A model generated the notes under the pieces. It was not told the origin of the DNA and did not search any database. It saw nothing but the letters and a program-made list of their open reading frames with translations. This document shows, piece by piece, positions 50,617-55,136 of a stretch of 64,000 nucleotides of DNA. The stretch lies in sequence record MT708547.1; one strand, given 5' to 3'. How positions within the stretch are numbered: position 1 is the first letter of the stretch; every line of letters begins with the position of its first letter. A program made the position numbers and the translations under genes.

Positions 50617-50794
50617 AGGTTCGGGAAGTATTCGTAATAAACCGTTTAATCGTCTTATCAGTACTATGAACAACCAATATATTTGTGGTGGATATTATTG
50701 GACTCAAGTAGATGATATTATCTTTGTACGCTTTCTAACCAAAAGGTCAGATAATAAAAATGTAAGAAAATTTCAGTACTGATAGCTGGAACCT
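50617..50794 (+). ncRNA. Putative multibranch ncRNA
   Basis: Nested stems AGGTTC/GAACCT, TATCAGTACT/AGTACTGATA, CCAATA/TATTGG, ATTATCT/AGATAAT. Confidence 0.45.
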
Positions 50795-50853
50795 TACTAT
50801 AGTAAAAAAAGACCTGATATGACTCGCTTAGGTCTTTAAATTATATAATGCGA

Positions 50854-50925
50854 GGGACGCTACGCCTTAGTTTAGGGCTAAATCGTAAGGATTGAGTACT
50901 AAACCGCCTTGAGAGTCCCAAGGCA
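50854..50925 (+). ncRNA. Putative pseudoknotted ncRNA
   Basis: GGGAC/GTCCC crossing GCCTT/AAGGC; GC-rich and intergenic. Confidence 0.45.
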
Positions 50926-51073
50926 ACTTTTAATTTAAACAAATTTGTACAAAACACAAAAAGGTGATATAATGATTCTATCTGAAGAAGATTGGGGTGT
51001 TTATCCTAAAGACGAATTTGATGGATTTTAATAAAAAATCTTGAACAAAAACAAAATAATGTGATATAATATT

Positions 51074-51205
51074 AGTACTGAATGAGGATAGGTGCAGTTG
51101 GTGAGATACCTCATGAGAAATCATAGACACCGTAGAAAGCGAAGGGCTTGGTGAGCGACGGCAATAGACAAGCATAGTAGAGGCTTGAAGAACTCATTTA
51201 GTACT
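51074..51205 (+). ncRNA. Repeated ncRNA family B, copy 1
   Basis: Closing stem AGTACTGAATGAG/CTCATTTAGTACT; shares motifs with 51804-51903; promoter at 51041-51070. Confidence 0.65.
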
Positions 51206-51309
51206 TTTTTAATTTAAAGAATTGTGCACTAGTTGTTTTAAATCAGTAAAACACCGAAGATGCAAGTACTATGTAGTATGTCAAAATCAAATACAATAAG
51301 AGTATACAT

Positions 51310-51783
51310 ATGAAAGTCGAATTGGGAAGTACTATCAAAGCAGGTTATACTGTTTCAGTTACAACGTGGGAAAATGATGGAGATAATTATCAAACAAATG
51401 ACATTGTAGGTTTATCTAAAGAAGATGCAAAAATGTTTATTGATACTTTACCCATTTTTAAATGCGTTCATAGTAAAAAGAAAGGTCTTGGAAACAAAGA
51501 ACTTAATATTAACCAGTACTTGGGTAAGTTCGAAGACCTAATCAATAACAATATTATCACAGTGTCATTTGCTGAAAAATATTTTGGTTATATTAACCCA
51601 AATAGTGATTATGATGAAGATGAACAACAAGACACGATTATTGAAGCATTGTCTGAAATTCTAGGATATCCAGTTGAATACGATTATGGTTTTATCAGAG
51701 TCTTTGAAAAAGTTCAAGTACTCTACTTCGATGAAGATACCGTAATTCCTTCAGGTTTGAAAGTAGACACCAGTACTTTATAA
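51310..51783 (+). CDS. Hypothetical protein
   Basis: 157-aa ORF. Confidence 0.65.
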   Translation: MKVELGSTIKAGYTVSVTTWENDGDNYQTNDIVGLSKEDAKMFIDTLPIFKCVHSKKKGLGNKELNINQYLGKFEDLINNNIITVSFAEKYFGYINPNSDYDEDEQQDTIIEALSEILGYPVEYDYGFIRVFEKVQVLYFDEDTVIPSGLKVDTSTL

Positions 51784-51803
51784 CATATAAAATACAGAAC
51801 AAA

Positions 51804-51903
51804 TACTGAATGAGGATAGGTCATTGTGACCGGATGAAGTGAAAGGCTTGGTGAGCGACGGCAAAACCCAACCGTAGTAGAAGCTCTAGGAACTTATTCA
51901 GTA
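51804..51903 (+). ncRNA. Repeated ncRNA family B, copy 2
   Basis: TACTGAATGAG/CTTATTCAGTA; GGCTTGGTGAGCGACGGCAA identical to copy 1. Confidence 0.65.
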
Positions 51904-51924
51904 CATTTTAATTTAAAGAATTAT

Positions 51925-52020
51925 GTGGGTGTGGCGGTATTGGTTGTACGCAAAGGTCTTAAAAACCTTCAGAGGGCTTAAAATGCATTCCTCTTGTGAG
52001 TTCGAATCTCATCACCCGTA
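51925..52020 (+). tRNA. tRNA-Leu(TAA), CCA not encoded
   Basis: AAGGT-CT-TAA-AA-ACCTT anticodon arm, long variable arm, GTGAG-TTCGAAT-CTCAT T-arm. Confidence 0.85.
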
Positions 52021-52049
52021 CTCATTAAATAGTCAATGGATTGACACAA

Positions 52050-52868
52050 ATGGCAAGAAAAGATATATTAGAACAAAAAGAATTAATATTAGATTTAATT
52101 TCCAAGAATACCGCAAAATCAACAATATGTAAGATTTTAAATTGTAAATCATCAACGTTAGATACGTATTTGAAAAAGATGGGTATTATATATAAAGGAA
52201 ATCAATCTGGTAAAGGAACAAAGAAAGGAACACATTCAAAATATGTAGAAGCTTCACATTTTCTTAATAAAAATTCATCAATATCATCTAATCAATTAAA
52301 ACTAAAATTATTGAGAGAAGGATATTTTGAACATAAATGTTCAAAATGTGAATTGACAGAATGGATGGGTAAACGAATACCAATTGAATTGGAACACATA
52401 GATGGTGATAATACAAATAACGAATTATCAAATCTATGTATGTTATGCCCAAATTGTCACGCACAAACCGATACATATAAAGGAAAAAATAAAAAATCAG
52501 TTCGTGAAAAGAAACATATACAAGAAATTTTAAATTTTGAAAATTCTTTTGAACGTTCAGAAATAAAAGATAAAGTTGGGAAGAAAATTAGAATTTCCAA
52601 AATTAAAAAATGTGAAGAATGTGGTAATGAATATAAAGGTAAAAATAAAAAATATTGTTCACGTGTTTGTATGCATTTATCACAAAAAAAATTTCTTTTG
52701 ACATACGAAGAACTTAAAGAAATAATTTGGAAATATCCAAGAACAAAAATAGGAGAAATGTATGGTGTTTCTGATAATACTGTCTTGAAACGTTGTAAAC
52801 TTCTTGATATAGAAGTTCCACCATTGGGATATTTCATAAGTTCAAAATATAAAGATAATAATCAATAA
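52050..52868 (+). mobile_element. Free-standing HNH homing endonuclease
   Basis: CSKCELTEWMGKRIPIELEHIDGDNTNNELSNLCMLCPNCHAQT; C-terminal Zn finger and HTH-like segment. Confidence 0.9.
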
Positions 52869-53071: not shown

Positions 53072-53121
53072 GGATGATTATAAATCTGAATTGACAGAAA
53101 CAGCTAAAACTGTTATTATCC
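53072..53121 (+). ncRNA. Repeated 50-nt ncRNA family A, copy 1
   Basis: GGATGAT/ATTATCC, TATAAATCTGAATTGACAG core, AACAG/CTGTT hairpin. Confidence 0.7.
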
Positions 53122-53452: not shown

Positions 53453-53502
53453 GGGTGGTTATAAATCTGAATTGACAGAGACTATTAAAACAGTCACCAT
53501 CC
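53453..53502 (+). ncRNA. Repeated 50-nt ncRNA family A, copy 2
   Basis: GGGTGGT/ACCATCC; same core; GACT/AGTC. Confidence 0.7.
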
Positions 53503-54716: not shown

Positions 54717-54766
54717 GGATAGTTATAAAGTTGAATTAACAGCGACACTTAAAATTGTCACTATCC
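54717..54766 (+). ncRNA. Repeated 50-nt ncRNA family A, copy 3
   Basis: GGATAGT/ACTATCC; TATAAAGTTGAATTAACAG; GACA/TGTC. Confidence 0.7.
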
Positions 54767-54825: not shown

Positions 54826-55136
54826 GGCCCCTTAGCTCACGCTTTGGTTAGAGCAGACGACTCATCGATAAATGGTGACTTTCACAAGTAATTGTGATTG
54901 AAAAACTGGATGAATTCAGGGAAACCTTAACACATAATGGTGATGGCAATCCTGAGCCAAGCCCAATAAGCGTATTGGGAAGGTGCAGAGACTAGGTGGT
55001 TCAGCACGATCTTGCTGTGTAATACACCAATAGCGTCCGGCATCCTTATAGGATGATGATATAGTCCTTTCTATAATGAAAATTATAGGTAAAAAGAATC
55101 GTTTGGTACTGTGTTCGACTCACAGAGGGGCCACCA
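54826..55136 (+). tRNA. tRNA-Ile2(CAT), interrupted by a group I intron (exons 54826-54865 and 55097-55136)
   Basis: Joined exons give GGCCCCTTAGCTCA..GACGA-CT-CAT-AA-TCGTT..AGGGGCCACCA, closely resembling E. coli ileX. Confidence 0.92.
54866..55096 (+). mobile_element. Group I self-splicing intron, 231 nt, ORF-less
   Basis: AATTCAGGGAAACC (54913), GGCAATCCTGAGCCAA (54945), GAAGGTGCAGAGACTAG (54979), GATGATATAGTCC (55055); exon ends in U, intron ends in G. Confidence 0.92.

Follow-up and report, generated by a model that had tools for sequence, protein, structure and literature searches.

A duplicated structured RNA in the transfer RNA island of Klebsiella phage Muenster belongs to a previously undescribed phage RNA family

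What do two similar, unannotated segments at the head of a phage transfer RNA (tRNA) island encode? The 64,000-nucleotide (nt) stretch analysed here, the window, is a 100% match to Klebsiella phage Muenster (MT708547, 347 kb, RaK2-like, Alcyoneusvirus), with window coordinates equal to record coordinates minus 248000, and the GenBank record of this phage carries no annotation at either segment. An earlier note on this DNA read the segments as two copies of an unassigned RNA with shared motifs, a closing stem and a candidate pseudoknot. We find that they are very probably genuine structured RNA genes. They belong to a previously undescribed structured phage RNA family, of a kind that is already known, the orphan stable RNAs of phage tRNA islands. 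The two copies are placed as follows.

51074–51206, plus strand: RNA copy 1 (c1), about 130 nt, covariance-model match of 93.7 bits
51801–51906, plus strand: RNA copy 2 (c2), about 102 nt, covariance-model match of 123 bits

These copies, the only two in the whole Muenster genome, share motifs far beyond chance, and every one of the motifs lies where the earlier note had placed it. They are 81% identical, with about 28 nt after GATAGGT missing from c2. The 17-mer ACTGAATGAGGATAGGT occurs exactly twice (51077 and 51805), as does the 20-mer GGCTTGGTGAGCGACGGCAA, counted from GGCTT (51145 and 51845), for which 100 shuffles gave zero matches with up to 3 mismatches permitted. TAGTAGA(G/A)GCT is found in c1 and c2 alike, and the 17-nt AT-rich tail TTTTAATTTAAAGAATT stands exactly 3′ of both (51207 and 51906). 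A coding explanation of this conservation is excluded, as c1 and c2 share no open reading frame (ORF) and their insertions and deletions are not multiples of three.

The family is narrow, comprising three clades that are all jumbo phages of Enterobacterales: RaK2-like Klebsiella phages; Salmonella phages 7t3 and SE_PL with a 360-kb phage; and Erwinia phage Kaldavass with a 371-kb phage. By blastn against GenBank phages, the element is present in all RaK2-like Klebsiella phages, in two copies each in K64-1, KP13-7, RCIP0023 and phiKp_21 and in one each in RaK2 and OU509535. In 7t3 and SE_PL, blastn found a 65-nt core at 86% identity; only the RNA core, and not its flanks, could be aligned between Muenster and 7t3, which we count as a sign of selection on the RNA. 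Pattern scans of IMG/VR and JGI metagenomes added the homolog of the 360-kb uncultivated phage (L004, the same as L178). A covariance-model search, which the earlier note had proposed as a check, recovers members in all three clades. The model, R1, was built from four short members; it recovers the Klebsiella, Salmonella-phage and L004 members at 86–125 bits and matches the 371-kb uncultivated phage (L211) at 39.4 bits (E about 1e-8). The L211 RNA is much more divergent, and it is identical to the RNA of Kaldavass.

Other matches fell away. Most of those from the IMG/VR pattern scan were due to chance after sorting with nhmmer and the covariance model, the real ones being L004, L007 (which is RaK2) and L211. 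A 140-kb phage locus (L352) has similar junction motifs but scored 9.9 bits and was excluded as unproven, and the sole match from the genome collection, in a Collinsella metagenome-assembled genome, was due to chance. The metagenome scan gave no new member, only the L004 phage again. No homolog was found in the searched tRNA regions of Serratia phage BF, GAP32, CBB, XbC2, T2 and T4, and blastn gave zero matches in E. coli genomes. Searched with Rfam 15 (4227 models) at the gathering threshold, the window and the loci of 7t3 (L002), RaK2 (L003) and L004 returned only tRNAs and a group I intron; at E-values up to 10, nothing in 50700–52100 matched over c1 or c2. A description of the family was not found in the RaK2 genome paper or in the literature searched. 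Several GenBank records put small hypothetical ORFs over the RNA (for example, 7t3_040 and K64-1 gp261-263), and the family corrects their annotation.

RNAalifold, applied to four sequences, gave a three-way junction. This is the fold of the RNA: a closing helix P1, a variable hairpin P2 and a P3 arm. In this third arm an AGUA/GAA internal loop that resembles loop E comes first and leads into the P3 hairpin, whose loop is 16 nt long. The parts of the two Muenster copies are listed below.

51074–51086 with 51193–51205, plus strand: c1 P1
51087–51090, plus strand: c1 J1/2, GAUA
51091–51094 (GGUG) with 51128–51131 (CACC), plus strand: c1 P2, enclosing a 33-nt insert
51113–51124, plus strand: c1 P2-insert hairpin, AUGA-GAAA-UCAU
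51132–51145, plus strand: c1 5′ junction
51146–51150 with 51169–51173, plus strand: c1 P3, its loop holding UGAGCGACGGCAA at 51152–51164
51174–51192, plus strand: c1 3′ junction
51803–51814 with 51893–51904, plus strand: c2 P1
51815–51818, plus strand: c2 J1/2
51819–51831, plus strand: c2 P2, GGUCA-UUG-UGACC
51832–51845, plus strand: c2 5′ junction
51845–51851 with 51868–51873, plus strand: c2 P3, loop at 51852–51867
51874–51892, plus strand: c2 3′ junction

Pairs were counted in alignment A5 (13 sequences, 12 distinct rows, three clades), which was fitted to the covariance model; a MAFFT alignment of c1 with the short forms put the 5′ ends wrong because of the P2 insert, and model-fitted alignments were therefore used. 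Standard pairs occupy 94% of the cells of A5, and 13 of its 24 pairs show changes on both sides. None of 500 shuffles equalled these pairing and double-change values, and registers slid by 1–3 columns were only 22–39% paired. Some members have G-U at several of the pairs, and these count as pairs only when the plus strand is taken as the RNA. Folding energies are −37.6 kcal/mol for c1 (z −3.6) and −27.3 kcal/mol for c2 (z −2.2), with the 5′ and 3′ ends paired in both. P1 reads ACUGAAUGAG in the Klebsiella phages, UAUCAGGA.. in the Salmonella phages and GUAAUUAAG in Kaldavass, and pairs in each. In P2, GGU/ACC becomes GGC/GCC in Kaldavass, and the fourth pair is G-C, C-G or U-A; in P3, GCUUG/CAAGC becomes GUGUG/CACAU and GUUAUA/UAUAAC.

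These compensatory changes and strand-specific G-U pairs bear out the proposal of two copies of a structured RNA gene on the plus strand. The closing stems had been said to pair still despite their changes; they do so in both copies, each with a G-U pair at a different position, and compensation preserves the stem in the Salmonella and Erwinia phage homologs, where a wholly different sequence is still paired. The variable-length insert that had been seen after GATAGGT is hairpin P2. This peripheral element is 13 nt long in most members, with a 33-nt insert carrying a GAAA-capped hairpin in c1 and a 9-nt duplication in RCIP0023.

What is conserved across the clades is not the helices but the junction strands, which are near-constant. 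GGAWAGG follows P1, a purine-rich strand precedes P3 (GnAGAAAGnGAA in most members, GAUGAAGUGAA in c2) and UAGUAGArGCU...GAA follows P3. About 35 junction nucleotides are conserved whatever comes after the RNA, be it an ORF, a tRNA or a tRNA-like RNA. The junction, as the universally conserved part, is probably functional, and the earlier suggestion of a protein- or ligand-binding core is a reasonable idea. Its GAA and AGUA strands would be opposed across an internal loop, where they match the bulged-G consensus of loop E/sarcin-ricin motifs.

The finer model of the earlier note fared less well. Its inner stem TTG/CAA is GTG/CAA in 7t3 and L004 and ATA/GGA in Kaldavass, and it competes with the covarying 6-bp P3; comparison of the homologs instead supports GCTTG(G)/(C)CAAGC as the inner helix (51146–51150 with 51169–51173 in c1). 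The pseudoknot GAGC:GCU(U/C) keeps two of its four pairs in Kaldavass, has lost one in KP13-7 c2 and shows zero compensatory changes. It is the sole 4-bp long-range candidate in the alignment without Kaldavass, and a nested alternative, AAGC/GCUU, which is intact in c1, L004 and Kaldavass and imperfect in c2 and 7t3, fits about equally well. The loop UGAGCGACGGCAA that had been called invariant is so throughout the Klebsiella and Salmonella clades, but Kaldavass has an unrelated 16-nt loop.

How the two copies might be transcribed is suggested by the sequences around them.

51041–51070, plus strand: c1 promoter, with −35 box TTGAAC at 51041–51046, TG at 51062–51063 and −10 box TATAAT at 51065–51070
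51205–51223, plus strand: U run 3′ of c1 P1, six T running into the AT-rich spacer TTTTAATTTAAAGAATT
51310–51783, plus strand: gp457 ORF, 157 amino acids, phrog_2290 (a family without annotated function), between the copies and outside the RNA
51764–51793, plus strand: candidate weaker c2 promoter (TAGACA, 18 nt, TAAAAT), within the end of gp457
51906–51922, plus strand: AT-rich spacer TTTTAATTTAAAGAATT, from c2 to tRNA-Leu
51925–52021, plus strand: tRNA-Leu(UAA), 20 nt downstream of c2, called by ARAGORN and Rfam

In a promoter scan, the c1 promoter has 10 of 12 consensus matches plus the TG, with TTGAAC 18 nt upstream of the −10 box and an extended −10, TGaTATAAT, that is a perfect TGnTATAAT. 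The sequence TGTGATATAAT of this promoter also stands directly upstream of the 7t3 and L004 homologs, giving c1, 7t3 and L004 an identical strong extended −10 (TGnTATAAT) immediately 5′ of P1. The distance of 4 nt that had been given between the −10 box and the start of c1 is correct, 51074 being the fourth base past the box end at 51070, and the actual 5′ end more likely lies nearer ~51076–51078. The candidate c2 promoter, a consensus match only, likewise has 10 of 12 matches. The scan found no promoter in the spacer between c2 and tRNA-Leu, so that c2 and tRNA-Leu probably form one transcript, and no separate promoter for gp457 after c1. The U run after c1 may serve as the tail of a terminator, as a site of RNase E-type processing or as an UP-like element. 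AT-rich tails of the TTTTAATTTAAAGAATT type are not specific to this RNA, as they also lie 3′ of another small RNA and of two tRNAs in the island. The shorter word TTTTAATTTAAA occurs 6 times against 0.1 expected (50928, 51207, 51906, 54355, 54770 and 60961); it comes after RNA genes and, at three or more of its sites, shortly before the −35 box of the promoter that follows, and may double as an UP-like element and a tail for processing or termination.

The Muenster copies stand at the head of an island with six tRNAs between 51925 and 55307 and a group I intron (ARAGORN, Rfam). In every clade the RNA adjoins tRNA-type genes inside a tRNA island, either with its own strong sigma-70 promoter or placed between tRNAs. 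An interval of about 20 nt that holds no promoter separates c2, and likewise the single RNA in RaK2 and in OU509535, from tRNA-Leu(UAA) downstream, and the homologs in RaK2, 7t3 and L004 are also upstream of tRNA-Leu(UAA). In 7t3 and L004, a cloverleaf-folding RNA begins 6 nt after the RNA and is followed by tRNA-Leu(UAA). The Kaldavass RNA, the only copy that directly follows a tRNA, begins at the CCA of tRNA-Ser(UGA), and 5 nt separate its end from a tRNA-like sequence; the counterparts of its flanking tRNAs in XbC2 and CBB stand only 7–8 nt apart. The tRNA-like RNAs directly 3′ of the RNA (7t3, L002 2584–2660, with the same position in L004; Kaldavass, L395 ~2783–2857) were called by neither ARAGORN nor Rfam in 7t3 and Kaldavass; that of 7t3 forms a cloverleaf with an oversized anticodon-type loop, and that of Kaldavass has a T-loop-like UUCAACU. 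In a search for a conserved RNA downstream of the family in all clades (element X), the Muenster sequence after c1 and the Kaldavass tRNA-like RNA showed weak similarity.

The gene between the copies, gp457, has no Pfam match and no relation to the ORF that precedes the 7t3 copy, and thus does not count as a conserved partner of the RNA. It is missing from RaK2 and from OU509535 after different recombinations between c1 and c2: the RaK2 RNA is chimeric, resembling c1 as far as the identical core, where the crossover lies, and c2 beyond it, whereas the OU509535 RNA is c1-like throughout and carries the flank that follows c2, with the crossover at the 3′ end. Because these junctions differ, two independent recombinations removed gp457 and one copy. 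About 580 homologs of gp457 (51310–51783; also L179 3501–4016) occur in T4-like phages; that of T2 lies immediately upstream of the tRNA cluster and other T-even matches lie at similar genome positions, and the linkage of gp457 to tRNA islands seems ancient.

A further exchange touches the downstream side of the locus. Muenster homology to K64-1 and RaK2 ends exactly at the spacer after c2 (break at 51923), and K64-1, RaK2 and RCIP0023 have a different tRNA-Leu allele without the HNH gene. The HNH endonuclease encoded after the Muenster tRNA-Leu (52050–52868; L002 2877–3689) is 52% identical between Muenster and Salmonella phage 7t3. The break looks like an allele replacement driven by a homing endonuclease, and homing-type exchange around tRNA-Leu may have helped to spread the RNA module.

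From the observed fold, strand, conservation and genomic placement we infer how the RNA would be expressed and processed, that it would act in trans and what its partner might be. Our tentative preference is for a stable RNA of the tRNA operon that acts in trans, likely through protein binding at the junction. The jumbo-phage tRNA islands would carry a family of small RNA genes (~100–130 nt), represented in Muenster by two paralogues. Host RNA polymerase would transcribe copy 1 early, using the extended −10 sigma-70 promoter of that copy, and the transcript would end at P1 followed by the U run; c2 and the single RaK2 and OU509535 copies would come first in a precursor that runs on into tRNA-Leu(UAA). 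Given the tRNA-adjacent placement and the RNA's own promoters, it is probably released like a product of the tRNA operon: RNase P would cleave at the tRNA that follows, the AU-rich spacer would receive cuts of the RNase E type, and exonucleases would remove the remaining overhang as far as P1. P2 would be a dispensable arm of variable length, the near-invariant junction a platform to which, most likely, a protein of the phage or the host binds, and the 16-nt P3 loop a clade-specific recognition element. A trans role is favoured because the ~35 junction nucleotides are conserved regardless of the downstream gene.

Several observations weigh against this reading. The constant position directly upstream of a tRNA-like gene also fits a cis role, and the loop E assignment comes from consensus matching only. 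Within Alcyoneusvirus, some copies depart from the model at conserved or paired positions: two pairs of P1 are mismatched in RaK2, where GAA has also become UAA, the loop of KP13-7 c2 carries a G-to-U change and the c1 copies of K64-1 and RCIP0023 have a 1-nt deletion in P1. Between RaK2 and Muenster, divergence inside the RNA is about equal to that of the flanks. One RNA copy has been lost twice by recombination, together with gp457, and absence from the searched tRNA regions of Serratia phage BF, GAP32, CBB and XbC2 marks the RNA as accessory.

The cis role suggested by position would make the RNA a leader, whether riboswitch or processing/stability element, for tRNA-Leu, for the tRNA-like gene or, in the case of c1, for gp457. 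A tRNA or tRNA-like gene always follows the RNA immediately, except where the RNA occupies the 5′ region of gp457, neither tRNA-Leu after c2 nor gp457 after c1 has a separate promoter in the scan, and conservation centred on the junction is aptamer-like. The c1 copies have P1 followed by 6–7 U, a possible conditional terminator, and c1 itself, with P1 and U6, could terminate. We nevertheless consider a leader unlikely. Only 5–6 nt separate the RNA from the next RNA gene in 7t3, L004 and Kaldavass, and in members other than c1 the next RNA gene follows after 5–20 nt and no terminator is present; in most members an expression platform would not fit, which makes a classical riboswitch unlikely. 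Conservation of the U run does not extend beyond c1, the other tRNAs of the island have plain promoters and short leaders, no riboswitch family matched and we know of no precedent for riboswitch control of a tRNA gene. A regulatory RNA that acts by base pairing, with the 16-nt P3 loop as antisense seed and the junction as scaffold or chaperone-binding site, would suit c1, with its own promoter and a 3′ end made of a stem and a U run. It would also suit the loop: the G+C-rich UGAGCGACGGCAA, in a phage of ~32% G+C, is identical in the Klebsiella and Salmonella clades despite diverged stems, and the Kaldavass loop, also of 16 nt and with another sequence, would suit a different target. Within the 64-kb window, the loop has no target beyond chance, with 4 matches to the loop complement against 4.1 expected (motif search) and a best duplex of −15.8 kcal/mol that is no better than any of 15 shuffled loops; blastn against E. 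coli genomes gave nothing. Typical small regulatory RNAs conserve the seed more than the scaffold; here the scaffold is the better conserved across clades, and we regard base-pairing regulation as quite unlikely.

Immediate contact with tRNA or tRNA-like genes in all clades, down to a Kaldavass start that coincides with the CCA end of tRNA-Ser, could also point to a new self-cleaving ribozyme that aids the cutting of phage tRNA precursors. The junction is compact with many invariant purines, and ribozymes beside viral tRNAs have a precedent (PMC10879173). However, no known ribozyme family matched at E-values up to 10, and conservation is lowest at the outer ends of P1, where cleavage at a terminus would have to occur. 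In the Klebsiella and Salmonella phages the transcript begins with the RNA, which would gain nothing from cleaving its own 5′ end, and the downstream cut is already supplied by RNase P; a ribozyme of this kind is very unlikely. Scarcely credible is a non-functional RNA, with the locus representing duplicated intergenic DNA that is kept because recombination or homing acts on it around the cassette of tRNA-Leu and HNH endonuclease. The copies do recombine (the RaK2 chimera, the OU509535 3′-end crossover), homology breaks exactly at the spacer after c2, and the Muenster tRNA-Leu allele comes with an HNH gene that shares 52% identity with that of 7t3. Against this stand the compensatory helix changes and one-strand G-U pairs, which denote selection at the RNA level, the conserved promoter in front, and the Kaldavass RNA, which sits in another tRNA context with no endonuclease annotated within 2.5 kb on either side. 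The trans-acting stable RNA stays our tentative choice. A bolder proposal, which we hold to be distinctly improbable, is that the core represents a new catalytic or ligand-binding fold in tRNA operons or a protein-bound scaffold with a swappable, guide-like P3 loop; if true, the new fold could be a self-cleaving ribozyme class that shapes tRNA precursors.

The surrounding island holds further features of its own. A tRNA(CAU) at 54826–55136 is apparently split in its anticodon loop by the group I intron (Rfam 54840–55088, 104 bits); its exons resemble the intron-less RaK2 tRNA-Met(CAU) (L003 5318–5395), and it is not annotated in the Muenster record. Three copies of a possible hairpin element of about 50 nt (53072–53121, 53453–53502 and 54717–54766) follow the pattern GGNNNNTTATAAA..TTGA..ACAG...TAAAA...NNNNCC and lead into an AT-rich run, TATTTTATT after the first copy and AAATTTTAATTTAA after the other two; they could represent one more family of small RNAs in the island. 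Upstream of c1, a candidate small RNA at 50849–50927 has its own TATAAT box, is conserved in RaK2 and ends in a terminator-like hairpin (50906–50924) followed by TTTTAATTTAAA; Rfam gave no match for it. A tiny ORF, MILSEEDWGVYPKDEFDGF (50945–51031), which RaK2 conserves, is served by an extended −10 promoter of its own, and a 38-amino-acid ORF remnant (50666–50782) lies upstream of it. The palindrome CAGTACTG has 34 sites in the window against 0.5 expected (for example 9498, 17936, 26002, 32605, 42139, 50450 and 60326), mostly inside ORFs, and the word is contained in the outer P1 of the Klebsiella-phage RNAs. AGTACT has 150 sites against 21 expected and TTCAGTACTGAA has 7. Palindromes are normally avoided in phages and such enrichment is unusual. 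A role of CAGTACTG as a promoter element was rejected, as a −10 box follows only 2 of the 34 sites.

Phage tRNA islands are increasingly viewed as modules for counter-defence and translation takeover, and we know of no role for the stable RNAs RNAC and RNAD of phage T4 after some 50 years. The family described here is compact (~100 nt), with strong covariation, clear promoters, variants that naturally have one copy or two, and members in cultured phages of three host genera. The role of non-tRNA RNAs in tRNA islands becomes experimentally approachable because the family is compact and covarying and includes cultured phages, and its interest lies mainly in its value as a tractable model for the orphan stable RNAs of phage tRNA islands.

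The family was also compared with known structured RNAs. Like three-way-junction riboswitches such as the purine class, it has a conserved junction, variable peripheral helices and a closing P1; unlike them, it has no room for an expression platform in most members and no family match, and its downstream "gene" is a tRNA. A closing helix with two arms in a three-way junction of ~100–130 nt recalls 5S ribosomal RNA in its predicted outline, but the 5S model gave no match at E-values up to 10 and P2 is far too short for the helix II–III domain. The AGUA strand that appears to face GAA in an internal loop of one arm is akin to loop E/sarcin-ricin motifs, and RaK2 has UAA where these would have GAA. 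ARAGORN and the Rfam tRNA model call the neighbours and not c1 or c2, which have no GGUUCGA-type T-arm. HDV-like theta ribozymes (PMC10879173) are likewise small, structured and immediately beside viral tRNA genes; they form a nested double pseudoknot, whereas the Muenster-type RNA has nested helices in a plain three-way junction, and neither an HDV-like nor any other ribozyme model in Rfam matched c1 or c2 at E-values up to 10. ROOL and GOLLD are also orphan structured RNAs, often of phages or prophages and near tRNA genes, but at ~500–800 nt and in multimeric assemblies (PMC5737381; bioRxiv 10.1101/2024.12.08.627333) they are far longer than the ~100-nt family, which has no Rfam match. The T4 species 1 and 2 RNAs, RNAC and RNAD (genes rnaC and rnaD), are small stable RNAs of a tRNA cluster to which no role has been assigned (PMC3014915; PMC9697503). 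R1 run on T4 69500–74500 with filters off gave a best score of 10.3 bits (E 0.4) and no sequence or structure homology to rnaC or rnaD; rnaC has a sequence like a tRNA T-arm, which the Muenster-type RNA lacks, and the T4 RNAs lie at the end of their cluster, whereas the Muenster-type RNA lies at the head of an island or between tRNAs, often with its own promoter. In their similar size (139 and 119 nt), their place in a tRNA cluster and their position beside homing-endonuclease genes, RNAC and RNAD are nevertheless the closest analogue, although not a homolog, of this phage RNA family.

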